Below the pieces are notes generated by a model, which was not told the DNA's origin, did not search any database, and saw only the letters and a list, made by a program, of their open reading frames with translations. The position numbers were made by a program, and so were the translations under genes. Source: Chara braunii (Eukaryota; Plantae; Charophyceae). Taken from it: 64,000 bases of DNA. The stretch spans positions 1,969,971 through 2,033,970 of the forward strand of contig BFEA01000003.1 of NCBI GenBank assembly GCA_003427395.1, read 5' to 3'. This document shows, in pieces, positions 1,192 to 19,497 of the stretch (position 1 is the first letter of the stretch; every line of letters begins with the position of its first letter).

Positions 1192-1288
1192 TCGTCACGG
1201 AGAACTGGCCCGTGACTGAAGGCAGAGAGGGAGAAGAGGACAACAAATGAGGGGCTGTGACAGACTGTTTCCTTGGAGTTTCACCAAC
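1192..1288 (-). mobile_element. 5'-truncated copy of the hammerhead-bearing short repeat (diverged)
   Basis: Reverse complement GTTGGTGAAACTCCAAGGAAACAGTCTGTCACAGCCCCTCATTTGTTGTCCTCTTCTCC...GTGACGA matches 12507-12606. Confidence 0.85.
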
Positions 1289-4825: not shown

Positions 4826-4930
4826 CTCCGACGAAACCGTTTGTCACAGCCCGTCGTTTGTTGTCCTCTTCTCCCTCCCTCCCTCTCTGCCCCTACGGTT
4901 TACCGTAGGCAGCTCCTCTGTTTGACGATA
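4826..4930 (+). mobile_element. 5'-truncated copy of the hammerhead-bearing short repeat
   Basis: CTCCGACGAAACCGTTTGTCACAGCCCGTCGTTTGTTGTCCTCTTCTCC...TACGGTTTACCG...TTTGACGATA, with the same 3' end as the other copies. Confidence 0.85.
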
Positions 4931-5174
4931 TGCGTACCGTCAATCATCTACGCTTTCGCAGTCCATAACACGACAAGTTCGTCCGTCAATCACGGAGATG
5001 AACGGCCAGTATGCGAAGTTGCTCTATGGGGATAGCCTCCTCCTTGAGCAGACGATAAGCTTGGCTTCACTGCCAGTTATTGACGAGCACATACACAGAG
5101 CGACAGAGAGAGAGAGAGAGGGGGAGAGAGAGAGAGAGAGACCTCTGTGTGAGAGAGAGAGAGAGAGATGGTAC

Positions 5175-9176: not shown

Positions 9177-9272
9177 ATACCTGTCTCGGCCTTTTGGCTA
9201 AAAATAGATCAAGTGCACTGTATCTGTTCTGATCAGTTTAATATCTGCCATCCGTGGTCCATCGGACCACAT
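9177..9272 (+). pseudogene. U2: 3'-truncated U2 snRNA retrocopy
   Basis: ATACCTGTCTCGGCCTTTTGGCTAA..AGATCAAGTG..GTATCTGTTCTGATCAGTTTAATATCTG..GTGGTCCATCGGACCAC matches the plant U2 5' half. It has insertions, an altered branch-pairing GUAGUA, no Sm site, and an A-rich tail. Confidence 0.88.
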
Positions 9273-9745
9273 TAAAAATAAAAGATTAGAAAAAAAAAAN
9301 NNNNNNNNNNNNGGTAATCATGGCATATGGCCAGAATAGGTCGAAAAGGAGTACAGGCTGGCTGGAGGTTGTAACACAGATGCGATAGTACAGAACGCGA
9401 GGAATGAGGTCGAGGAAAGGAGGAAGAGGCAAGGAGAAGTGCATTGCGTGGCAGTGGTTGCTTTTGAGGAACGGTTATCTCTGACCGTGATCCTGAGAAG
9501 GAAGAGAGGGAGCAGCGAGAATAGAATGGTGTGTTTTCACCTGCCAGTGAATGTCGATGGGCTGTTGTTATGACAGACTGTTCTGAATGTCAAAAAAATG
9601 AAGAGATTCATTTGGGCATAGTGATACTTTGCTGGTTGGGATTCAAGTTCATTCAACACTGTTAAATAATTAAAATAAATGAATTGTTTATTGTGTACCT
9701 AGCTTCGTCTACAACAACCAAAATTTAATGCATGTGTCACGGGCA

Positions 9746-12246: not shown

Positions 12247-12315
12247 CCCCTCGTTTGTTGTCCTCTTCTCCCTCTCTGCCTACGGTTTACCGGGCAGTTC
12301 TATTTGACGATATAT
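12247..12315 (+). mobile_element. Short 3' fragment of the hammerhead-bearing repeat in (TA)n, followed by an inverted end fragment
   Basis: CCCCTCGTTTGTTGTCC...TTTGACGATATA, then ATCGTCACAAAC (reverse complement of the element 3' end). Confidence 0.85.
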
Positions 12316-12345
12316 ATCGTCACAAACATATATATATATATATAT

Positions 12346-12608
12346 GTTTGCTGGCTTGTGATGGGGTGTGAACCGACAGTCTGTAGAGTTTTCCATCTGG
12401 TGTGGGTGAGTGATAATCTACTTTGATTTGGTTAAGGTAGATTATCATTTACAGTGTAATCAGTGAGGGGATTCTGCAGACTATTGAGGGTTCAGCCTCC
12501 TGATGAGTCGGTGAAACTCCAACGAAACAGTTTGTCACAGCCCCTCGTTTGTTGTCCTCTTCTCTCTCTCTGCCTACGGTTTACCGGGCAATTCTGTTTG
12601 TGACGATA
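12346..12608 (+). mobile_element. Longest copy of the hammerhead-bearing short repeat (retrozyme- or Penelope pLTR-like)
   Basis: Bounded by (TA)n on both sides. Contains a long G:U-rich hairpin, the hammerhead core and the common 3' tail ending TGACGATA. Confidence 0.8.
12477..12534 (+). ncRNA. Type III hammerhead ribozyme motif
   Basis: Stem III CAGACTAT-T / ACAGTTTG; stem I GAGG-(GTTCAG)-CCTC; core CTGATGA; stem II GTCGG-(TGAAACT)-CCAAC (CCGAC in the copies at 4826 and 14231); GAAA. Predicted cleavage after 12485. Confidence 0.85.
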
Positions 12609-12631
12609 TATATATATATATAATATATATA

Positions 12632-13393
12632 TAGGGTTACCTGACCGAACGTTTGGGGGCCCCCGAGCTGGCCCCCGAACGTTCGGGCGTTCGGGGTCCC
12701 GTTCGGGGGCCAAACACCTCCAGGTTCGGCCCCCGCCAAAAAACATTTCGGGGCGTAAAAATATTTTTTTTTTCTGAATTGTTTTTTGTCAGTTCTCTAT
12801 GATGCAACCTACACGCCTATAAATTTTGAAGCCATTCTGATAAGCCAAAAAAACATTAAAAATCGTCAAAGATGGGGGTGTCAAAACGTGCTCGCCCACT
12901 CACTATTTTGTTTTTTTTCACTTTTAACTTCTTGTTTTCACTTTATTTCGGGGCCTAAAGATTTTTATTATTTTTTGAAAACTTTTTAATGAGTTATTGA
13001 TTATGTAAACTACATATCTGTAAATTTTCAGGGCACTTGTCAATGCCAAAAAATAATTAAAAATCGGCAAATATGGCGGTGTCGAAAAGGTGCTGGCACA
13101 CTCACTCATTTTAATTCTCTTTTTATTTTTTTTACTTTTATCATAATGTTTATTTTTTGTATTTGATTTTTAATTCAAATTTGGTAAAGAATTTGGATGT
13201 AGTTCCCAGGCAAATGTTGTTTAGTTTATTTTTCTTCATAACATTGTTTTTTTTGGAATTTTTTGAAAACTTGTTGTTGTTGTTTTTTTCGGTTTGCGTT
13301 CGGCCTGAACGGCCGAACGCCTTCCGAAGGAATCCCGTACGTTCGAGCGTTCGGGTTCGGGCGTTCGGCCCGTCCCGACCGCAGGTAACCCTG
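12632..13393. mobile_element. hAT-like MITE (YAGGGTTRCC family) inserted in (TA)n; partial second copy at ~13420-13995
   Basis: TIRs TAGGGTTACC / GGTAACCCTG and subterminal CCGAAC/GTTCGG repeats; homologous to 31796-32560 and 35372-36022. Confidence 0.85.
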
Positions 13394-14171
13394 TATATAT
13401 ATATATATATATTCAAAATCAGGGTTCGAACATTCGGGGTCCCATTCAGGGTTAACCCTACCAAAACTTATATTGGGTCCGAAATATTATTCTTGTTCTT
13501 TTATTTTTTTTTTCCCGAGTTCTTTATAATGTGAGGTACATGCCTATTAATTTTGAAGACATTTTTCTAAGCCAAAAACAAATGAAAAATCGTCAAAGAT
13601 GGCGGTGTCAAAACGTGCTCGCCCACTCACTATTTTGTTTTTTGTCCTCTTTTCACTTTTTGTTTTCACTTTATTTCGGAGCTTAAACAATTTTATTTAT
13701 TATTTTTTGAATTTTTTTTTATGAGTGGCGTATCATGTGAAATACACCTCTATAAATTTTCAAGGCATTTACCTAAGCTAAGAAAAAATGAAAAATTGGC
13801 AAAGATGGCGATGTCAAAAATGTGCTCGCCCACCCATTAATTTTAATTTTCTTTTCATTTTTTTTTTTATTTATTATTTTATTGTTTTTTATTTATTTAT
13901 TTAGTTAAAATTTTGTAAAGAATTTAGACGTGATGCTAAGGCACATGTTATTCAGTTTATTTTTTTTGCATAACATTTTTTTTTTCATATTTTTTATGAG
14001 CTACCAGTCGGGCCGCCCGGGTCACCTTGTTTTCCCGAGCGGTCCGGTCGTGCAAGGATCAGGGAAGGTCCCGACAAAAAAAAAAAAAAAACACTATGTT
14101 ATTCAAAAAGATAAATTGAACAACTATTGCCCCAAGGTCACGTTGACATTCGTTACCGAATTTGAAATTAA

Positions 14172-14211
<40 letters not shown>

Positions 14212-14230
14212 ATTTGACGATATATATATA

Positions 14231-14415
14231 GATGAGTCGGTGAAACTCCGACGAAACAGTTTGTCACAGCCCCTCGTTTGTTGTCCACTTCTCCCTCTCT
14301 GCCTACGGTTTACCGGGCAGTTCTATTTGACGATATATATNNNNNNNNNNNNNNNNNNNNGGTTTACCGGGCAGTTCTATTTGACGATATATATATATAT
14401 ATATTCTGTTTGTGA

Positions 14416-14420
<5 letters not shown>
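14231..14420 (+). mobile_element. Further truncated copies of the hammerhead-bearing repeat in (TA)n
   Basis: GATGAGTCGGTGAAACTCCGACGAAACAGTTTGTCACAGCCCC...TTTGACGATATA, plus shorter 3' stubs at 14361 and ~14404. Confidence 0.88.
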
Positions 14421-14461
<41 letters not shown>

Positions 14462-15032
14462 TCATATATATATATATATATATATATATTTTGTCCGGTT
14501 GGGCAGGTGGCCCCGGGCCATTCTGGTAGCCTAGTGTATTTTTTATATTTTATTTTTATTTTTATTTTCGTCCACCTTCGGCCCAAACTGCCGAACATGT
14601 CTACAGGGGGGCCCGAACGTTCGGCCGTTCGGGTTCAGCCGAACTCCGGCTACCATGTTCAAAATATTATTTAGTTTAATATCACACTGTCTTTTTTCTC
14701 TTATATTTTATCCTCACAAGCAGACAGGGATGTGGACCCAGAGTTCGCTGCCTACTGCCACTAACTTTAACCAACCATCATGTTATATATTTGTCCGAGC
14801 GACTTAGATCGTGAGGATATATTTTTGAGAAAATGAGTTATCTCATCATCTGCATCCTTTCAAGGTATAGATTAACAAACTTTTTTTTTATACACACGTT
14901 AACCAGGGGTGTAATTTCCGGCGAATCTTTGCACCGAATTGCACCGAAACTGTCACATTGTGCTGATTTTTAGCCCCCTGTTAACCGTCTCTCCTTATCT
15001 CTAATTAATATTTTCCTTATCAGCATAGTGAG

Positions 15033-18631: not shown

Positions 18632-19497
18632 AGTTTGTGACATCTTAATATTTTATGGTTAGCGATATAGTTCGTCGATTGAGTCCACGTGAACGGTAAG
18701 TCAGTTGGGAGATCAGTGCCCTGATGTCGACGCTCACACAGTTCAGTCTTAGGCATTCTACCACACGTATCCCCTATGCTACAACGAGACGAGAAAACGT
18801 TATCGGTTGATTCACCTCCTCAATCACAAGTAGTACCTTTTTAATTCGGATATAGATCGATAGCTCATCAAGGATACGTCTACCTAAAGGTGGTGACAAC
18901 CCCTCACCTCGCAGAGCCCTGTCCTGTCACAAGAAGTCGTGAGAGGTATAGATAGCTCGCACAGTTGGAGTGGCATCACTGTCTGCCACCCTTTTGATGT
19001 AGCACTCCTGCGTGACACATCCGTAAGGGTCCCTAACTCGTTGGAGCATCCGAGATTGACGCGTCGTCAAGCGCACGGTCTCCACAAGCGAGGGGACCTT
19101 CACGGCCGCGTCACGCAGGATTTGGTAGGACTTTTAGTTGTAGAGCGTTGCCGCTCCGGCCGAGTGCGCCAGCCATACCTCTCGCGAACCCCTACGACAG
19201 GATAGGGAGGCGCGAGGTATAACTTACCTCCACCTGCAGAAGTTGTCACCATCCCTTAGGTGAGAGTATCTCCGGCGAGCTGCCAGTCCACAGTACAAAA
19301 GTTTTTACATGCAATCGCATAGGTGAACTAGTCGATGGCGTTTTCTCGTACATTGTAGCATAGAGGATACGTGTAGTTCCACGCCTCTATCGAACTCGTA
19401 TGCAAGCTAGCGAACTAGGGGCTGAAGTCCCAAGCGCGACTCATCGTCGGTCGACTAGGACGTATCCTTCTTACCACGAGTTACACCACGTCAAAAC
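18632..19497. other. ~860-nt imperfect rod-like foldback
   Basis: Apex TTGACGCGTCGTCAA (~19056-19070). Successive complementary blocks include TCCTGCGTGAC/GTCACGCAGGA, GAGAGGTAT/ATACCTCTC, TGGTGACAAC/GTTGTCACCA, CTATGCTACAA/TTGTAGCATAG, ACACGTATCC/GGATACGTGT and TTGGGA/TCCCAA. Confidence 0.85.

Follow-up and report, generated by a model that had tools for sequence, protein, structure and literature searches.

Positions 12346-12606 of a 64,000-nucleotide stretch of Chara braunii contig BFEA01000003.1 (the window, meaning the whole stretch analysed) hold a 5'-truncated copy of a very abundant non-coding repeat family of this stonewort alga. The element combines a type III hammerhead ribozyme with an upstream arm complementary to it, and the two form a long hairpin that is supported as an RNA-level structure specific to the + strand. 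We propose, with a probability of roughly 0.6, that this sense hairpin is a lock in cis that keeps the ribozyme off in the full-length RNA of a Penelope-like-type retroposon. That the hairpin acts as a lock, and at what point of the retrotransposition cycle it would do so, is our inference.

The MFE fold of the + strand of 12346-12517 is a single long imperfect hairpin of 70 pairs with an energy of -83.8 kcal/mol. Shuffled sequences have a mean of -44.3 kcal/mol (z -10.8), and none of 200 is equally stable. The initial annotation of this DNA had claimed that 12346-12428 pairs with 12430-12517, and all four helices that it listed are found in the + strand MFE fold. Folding both strands, the check that it had proposed, points to a sense-specific RNA structure, since the reverse complement reaches only -35.4 kcal/mol. 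Eighteen of the 70 pairs are G:U, with the G nine times in the 5' arm and nine times in the 3' arm. The 3' arm contains the stem III 5' strand, the cut site, stem-loop I, the CUGAUGA core and the stem II 5' strand of the ribozyme (Table 1).

Table 1. Features of the hammerhead element and of related copies in the window (positions are those of the window).
Feature	Position	Strand	Basis or remark
(TA)n microsatellite, 5' junction (insertion target)	12329-12345	.	Sequence; same in L001
Hairpin 5' arm (anti-ribozyme arm)	12346-12428	+	MFE fold; 5'-truncated, family members ~34 bases longer upstream
Hairpin apical loop	12428-12430	+	MFE fold, mapped reads
Hairpin 3' arm as paired in the window copy	12431-12517	+	MFE fold, Rfam match, pair list
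Type III hammerhead	12478-12533	+	Rfam RF00008, 29.9 bits, E 2e-4
Predicted self-cleavage site, after position 17	12485/12486	+	Rfam match, family variants
Remainder of 3' arm: stem II 3' strand, GAAA, stem III 3' strand, GUCACAGCC	12518-12542	+	Composite fold
Pyrimidine-rich 3' tail, fixed 3' end ...GTGACGA	12543-12606	+	Sequence, copies, mapped reads, composite fold
Small stem-loop in 3' tail	12570-12591	+	Adjoins fixed 3' end
(TA)n microsatellite, 3' junction	12607-12635	.	Sequence
Separate tail-only 5'-truncated copy	12247-12317	+	89-93% identical to 12541-12611
Inverted 19-nt fragment of family 3' end	12310-12328	-	Exact complement of 12595-12613
5'-truncated copy starting inside the ribozyme core, directly after (TA)n	14229-14338	+	Stem II intact (CCGAC)
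Diverged relative, 3' module only	1192-1288	-	84% identity
Diverged relative, 3' module only	4826-4931	+	79% identity

The rod described in the annotation is real, but its extent has to be redrawn. In the full hairpin it ends at 12542 rather than at 12517, the window copy being shortened and the family reaching ~34 nt further 5'; positions 12518-12542 are unpaired in the window copy because their 5' partner is missing, and are paired in full-length members. The element is not a viroid-like rod over the whole molecule, because a pyrimidine-rich 3' tail of ~60 nt stays outside the hairpin.

The annotation had also held that nearly every deviation from complementarity is a G:U pair, as would not be expected of a decaying DNA palindrome. 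In a strand-neutral alignment of arm 1 with the reverse complement of arm 2 (12346-12517), 52 columns are Watson-Crick, 18 are transitions that give G:U on the + strand, 2 are transitions that give A.C on the + strand and 10 are transversions, with 8 gap positions. The first statement therefore holds for transitions (18 of 20) and fails for all deviations taken together (18 of 38). The split of 18 G:U-type to 2 A.C-type transitions in the window copy has a binomial p of 2e-4; in the full-length composite rod described below it becomes 20 to 2 (p 6e-5). As a control we used an imperfect inverted repeat of 866 nt in the same window (18632-19497), which folds on both strands (-355 and -399 kcal/mol) and has 25 G:U-type against 45 A.C-type changes on the + strand. 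The transition split differs between the hairpin and this control (Fisher p = 2e-5), and the second statement is upheld, the palindrome showing no such bias. The repeat at 18632-19497 itself behaves like a DNA-level palindrome. Strand asymmetry, the control palindrome and a retroposon-type pattern of copies rule out that the hammerhead element is a DNA palindrome or foldback transposon.

Family-wide evidence came from reads mapped onto 12346-12603 (one raw-read poly(A) RNA run, one DNA run and two environmental metatranscriptome runs) and from pattern scans. The family majority differs from the window copy at 12416, 12483, 12521 and 12591, where G makes up 94-99% of DNA depth and the window copy has A (A>G at 12483, 99%; at 12521, 94%), and by one loop T. 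An extra T after 12426, in the apical loop, occurs in about half of the RNA reads there and in both environmental RNA contigs. None of the rod's G:U pairs is confined to the window copy, and the family pair G12416:U12442 adds a nineteenth. Because the majority differs only at four bases and the loop T, the G:U pairs are ancestral and not a product of decay.

The arm is likewise not peculiar to the window copy. Summed DNA depth is ~1.0M over the 5' arm, ~1.5M over the ribozyme and ~2.2M over the tail (depths are sums over contigs, not copy numbers); the arm thus stands at ~0.6-0.7 of the hammerhead, and so is a standard component of the family. A rice-paddy RNA library contains a 456-nt contig that matches 12347-12582 and differs only by three of the majority changes. 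Both environmental RNA contigs carry a near-majority full rod and run on into (TA)n and flanks as genomic copies do. A metagenome pattern scan with the 5' arm returned one contig, L001, and the copy at L001:507-680 repeats the strand asymmetry, with -77.1 kcal/mol on the + strand (z -7.6) against -27.6 kcal/mol on the - strand (z -0.5). The same scan of IMG/VR gave no match to the 5' arm. Other long copies, for which the annotation had predicted the arm, therefore have it, as seen in L001, in the two environmental RNA contigs and in DNA depth.

A sister family, 82-89% identical, is common to ours only from 12430 to the 3' end and has different sequence upstream, so that its module boundary is exactly the hairpin apex at 12430. 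In 74 DNA contigs the sequence departs from the 5' arm at 12429 into another sequence starting TCGTCACAGG. The flanks of the sister family, seen as loose read ends, are absent from the window.

The ancestry of the arm bears on a reading in which the hairpin is a neutral by-product, left by Penelope-type inverted duplication or by snap-back during reverse transcription, with G:U pairs that arose by strand-asymmetric mutation. Inverted 5'-truncated copies beside direct ones are, with a microsatellite bias, typical of Penelope-like elements (Craig et al., 2021; PMC8557442), the apex at 12430 coincides with the start of sister-family similarity, as expected if the arm was copied back from a template end, and the arm is likely to have originated by inverted duplication whichever reading is right. 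The composition of the arm nevertheless makes a wholly neutral history very improbable. To reach a bias of 18-20 to 2, one strand would have to undergo both A>G and C>U but not the reverse changes, and the G:U pairs are fixed across the family, not scattered among copies as by-products would be; the control palindrome is without the bias. Opposite invariant core and stem II bases, the 5' arm has G facing U at 12358, 12354 and 12350 and U facing G at 12357, 12352 and 12349. Both A>G and C>U must thus have occurred in the arm, which a single editing process does not explain, and a C content of 30% in the transcript's tail argues against a general C>U pressure. To our knowledge, ADAR-type editing of double-stranded RNA is not known outside animals.

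The hammerhead scores 29.9 bits in the window copy and 26.2 bits in the L001 copy, both below the RF00008 gathering score of 48.5. The core is kept (CUGAUGA 12500-12506, GAAA 12524-12527), and N7 (12504) is the sole core site listed as variable across the family. The family majority has a stem III of 7 bp, a stem I of 4 bp, a stem II of 5 bp and a GUU triplet, and the majority ribozyme alone folds as a hammerhead (-17.7 kcal/mol). In the window copy, the private G>A changes at 12483 and 12521 damage the ribozyme by placing an A.C mismatch in stem III (A12483) and a C.A mismatch in stem II (A12521). Judged from these bases, the hammerhead is degenerate in the window copy and canonical in the family majority. 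At position 12485, next to the predicted cut, the family has U, C or A, with no G among the variants listed; the starts of short copies cluster at 12484-12492. An Rfam search found no hammerhead on the - strand of the element, which excludes an opposed pair of ribozymes as in Avsunviroidae. A microRNA precursor was also rejected, the Rfam microRNA matches being at chance level (E at least 0.2) and far under gathering scores.

Upstream of 12347, 90 DNA contigs and both environmental RNA contigs continue with a common sequence, which is also present at L001:900-934. We built a composite from this ~34-base 5' extension and the window copy with the four majority bases. The composite folds into a hairpin of ~230 nt, in which the extension pairs with CGAAAC and GUCACAGCC (12523-12542) and the whole type III hammerhead lies within the 3' arm. 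Its free fold has -139.2 kcal/mol, against -98.2 kcal/mol with the ribozyme stems enforced, a difference of ~41 kcal/mol; for the truncated window copy, the corresponding values are -97.6 and -74.1 kcal/mol, a difference of ~23.5 kcal/mol. The rod occupies bases that the ribozyme needs, and the mutual exclusion with the active hammerhead proposed in the annotation is confirmed at this level. Of the "conformational switch" that it suggested, the two exclusive folds remain, but not a switch at equilibrium; "lock" is the better term, because transcription reaches the 5' arm ahead of the ribozyme and the hairpin is favoured by ~41 kcal/mol. With the 5' arm transcribed first, the hairpin should win kinetically as well.

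In so large a family, variants that reach at least 1% of DNA depth must have passed through active source elements. Within rod pairs, nine such variants keep the pair (12416, 12420, 12439, 12448, 12476, 12481, 12504, 12509 and 12514) and three break it (12465, 12475 and 12485). Within the ribozyme, nine of nine are compatible with catalysis by predicted structure (P ~1e-3 under neutrality), being at N7, at position 17, in loops or in stems with the pair kept. The variants at 12481, 12504, 12509 and 12514 keep both folds. These variants are read-derived and unlinked. Transitions at Watson-Crick rod pairs number 6 that keep the pair against 2 that break it, a split that is not significant alone, and the alignment of two complete rods contains 0 compensatory double changes. 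We take the pattern of variation to support selection on both conformations, with sense-strand pairing itself selected.

The element is present in poly(A) RNA, with the first mate mostly on the - strand (~3 to 1), the orientation that corresponds to sense RNA in most stranded libraries. Since 64% of mapped RNA reads run on into unrelated sequence and variant frequencies differ between read directions, individual copies lying within other transcripts account for much of the RNA signal. In poly(A) RNA the 5' arm has ~5% of the depth of the tail (~20-fold lower), against ~45% in DNA (~2-fold lower); this could result from expression of short copies, from cleavage or from loss of double-stranded RNA. 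The poly(A) reads show no preferred RNA starts or ends, including no pile-up at 12486. Flank-to-element junctions occur in RNA reads at 12490-12494, and among the 18 best-supported head-to-tail joints listed, 7 re-enter at 12484-12492, beside the predicted cut site (P 4e-6). Such re-entries would fit cleaved RNA having served as template.

A stable, possibly circular RNA stage, which the annotation had suggested, was not borne out by this oligo-dT library. The reads have no sharp ends, and a single RNA read carries a head-to-tail joint (12600>12347), which also occurs in two DNA contigs; other joints, for example 12595>12353, occur in DNA only. Absence of circles is weak evidence here, because an oligo-dT-selected library would miss them. 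A viroid- or retrozyme-like cycle would have units of tandem transcripts cut by the hammerhead and ligated, with the rod as a storage or ligation form in which the arm splints the 12485/12486 nick. The geometry suits this, as the cut site lies inside the rod helix (U12485:A12378, G12486:C12377) in an arrangement known for ligation in hammerhead viroids, and the head-to-tail joints and the near-majority full rods in two metatranscriptome contigs speak in the same direction, as does the description of retrozyme circular RNAs as highly self-paired (PMC7761336, PMC5680766). We nevertheless judge such a cycle unlikely, given that the joint in RNA is shared with DNA contigs, that the environmental RNA contigs have the (TA)n and flanks of genomic copies, and that the copies are for the most part scattered singly, each with one ribozyme and hence no second cut site. 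The tail outside the rod and the lack of a - strand hammerhead also count against it.

The hairpin might alternatively serve some other RNA role (recognition or priming by the reverse transcriptase/endonuclease, stabilisation of the 5' end, or a Dicer substrate), the overlap with the hammerhead being incidental. RNA-level conservation itself specifies no purpose, and the low depth of the arm in poly(A) RNA relative to DNA could reflect double-strand processing. We consider this improbable, however, because the arm complements exactly the ribozyme-bearing segment up to GUCACAGCC and nothing else, and because armless short copies are at least as abundant, so that the arm is dispensable for retrotransposition; the chance-level microRNA matches argue against it too.

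The five copies in the window have the 3' module in common and differ in their start points, which mostly abut (TA)n; the 5' arm is absent from all four fragments other than 12346-12606. A fixed 3' end, ragged 5' truncation, microsatellite insertion and partial or inverted copies, as in Penelope-type retroposons, are all found, and by these sequence features the element would fit a non-autonomous retroposon of Penelope-like type. No autonomous partner encoding a reverse transcriptase was identified within the window. A 294-nt direct repeat was considered as a tandem unit with two ribozymes and rejected: the upstream repeat is the tail-only copy (71 nt), which has no ribozyme, plus the 19-nt inverted 3'-end fragment. 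The stem-loop in the tail is a candidate recognition hairpin for a partner reverse transcriptase, and its closing pair is broken in the window copy by the private A12591. The relative at 4826-4931 has a longer and better-paired tail stem-loop (4888-4913; CCTACGG ... CCGTAGG). Two places, 12303-12328 and 14403-14465, have opposed family 3' ends on either side of (TA)n (GACGA-(TA)n-TCGTC), a sign that the palindromic (TA)n received insertions in either orientation. An assembly gap (N run) at ~14343-14361 lies within the cluster of family copies.

Under the cis-lock reading, the arm probably originated by inverted duplication, the apex at 12430 being the start of sister-family similarity, and would have been kept by selection on source elements as an imperfect, G:U-rich complement of the ribozyme. 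During transcription the 5' arm would be made first and the more stable hairpin would form, turning the ribozyme off; the full-length RNA, protected from self-cleavage, could then be copied in its entirety. Where the arm is missing, or the hairpin is evaded, the RNA would be cut at 12485/12486 and give rise to the many short copies. One objection is that, for a ribozyme that is purely a liability, silencing by a core mutation would cost less than an arm of 80-115 nt, so that some step must still require the ribozyme. The window copy at 12346-12606 would be a 5'-truncated, mutationally dead member of the family.

Three groups of known systems resemble the Chara element in part. Plant LTR retrozymes are likewise non-coding and non-autonomous, with a type III hammerhead and self-paired RNA that buries the ribozyme (PMC7761336, PMC5680766). 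They are 600-1000 nt long and contain two hammerhead LTRs that flank a core with PBS/PPT, whereas the Chara element is ~300 nt, has no LTRs and only a single ribozyme per unit, and its fixed 3' end and ragged 5' truncation in (TA)n are unlike LTR-type integration. Hammerhead viroids also sequester a type III hammerhead in a stable alternative helix, with the two folds exclusive. In viroids, however, the opposing strand encodes the ribozyme of the other polarity and the RNA is circular and replicates from RNA to RNA, whereas the Chara element has very many DNA copies, no - strand hammerhead and no IMG/VR match to its 5'-arm pattern; its complementary arm lies upstream, so that there is no co-transcriptional window for the ribozyme.

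The third group, animal non-LTR retrozymes and Penelope hammerheads, is alike in being short and non-autonomous, in its microsatellite bias and in its tandem or inverted partial copies, and animal non-LTR retrozymes are thought to be mobilised by Penelope-like elements (PMC8557442; bioRxiv 10.64898/2026.07.22.740005). Their hammerheads are type I, often minimal and dimer-dependent, and stand in tandem arrays, in contrast to the full type III hammerhead, mostly dispersed copies and dedicated complementary arm in Chara. Canonical hammerheads have been reported in two Penelope-like subclades, from C. braunii and spike mosses (Craig et al., 2021; PMC8557442). The Chlamys/PLE-X Penelope-like elements of Chara braunii thus share with our family the reported host and the presence of canonical hammerheads, and are likely its autonomous partners or the donors of its 3' module. 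The words "non-autonomous" and "hairpin" do not occur in the text of Craig et al., 2021 (PMC8557442).

Among retroposons with a single hammerhead, the Sm-alpha elements of schistosomes are dispersed and SINE-like; their topology is unlike the type III of Chara, and we know of no built-in antisense arm described for them. The principle of hammerhead sequestration is therefore known, and what is new is a non-LTR, (TA)n-targeting element with a single type III ribozyme, a dedicated upstream arm and no ribozyme of opposite polarity. The family places the sequestration principle of viroids and retrozymes in a non-LTR element of a streptophyte alga. With variants that spare both folds, and with long uncut copies beside short copies that start at the cut site, it would lend itself to studying when the ribozyme has to act and when it has to stay silent.

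A bolder reading, which we regard as doubtful, would make the ribozyme and the upstream antisense arm a programmed two-state device, in which armless partial copies are cut and so define RNA ends and the armed unit is shielded or, when transcribed in tandem, splinted so that it can be ligated into a circle. If true, it would form a bridge between plant retrozymes and viroids on one side and animal Penelope-linked retrozymes on the other, and would give a testable role to the hammerheads of Penelope-like elements, whose function in these retroelements is an open question (PMC8557442).

The IMG/VR pattern scan with the majority ribozyme core returned only an armless phage hammerhead. It lies in an intergenic spacer of two near-identical phage contigs (L003:3887-3941 and L002:3333-3387, - strand) and is of type III (RF00008, 53.6 bits). 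Over 29 nt, covering the core, stem II and loop II, it equals the algal family majority letter for letter; similarity ends beyond this segment, and an antisense arm is absent. The identity could reflect convergence on the Rfam consensus, or could hint at a source of the motif.

Two further elements of the window deserve mention. A GC-rich foldback or MITE-like element at 12623-13402 adjoins the hammerhead element in the same (TA)n tract; its terminal inverted repeats, GGGTTACCTG ... CAGGTAACCC, are 95% complementary, and it has internal CGTTCGGGG-type repeats. The same kind of foldback element is present at L001:975-1080 and L001:240-365, and in L001 it interrupts a second fragment of the family. 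A match to U2 snRNA at 9177-9296 (66.4 bits), in which 88 middle and 3' model positions are replaced by 6 bases and which terminates in a run of A, probably represents a pseudogene that was truncated and retroposed.
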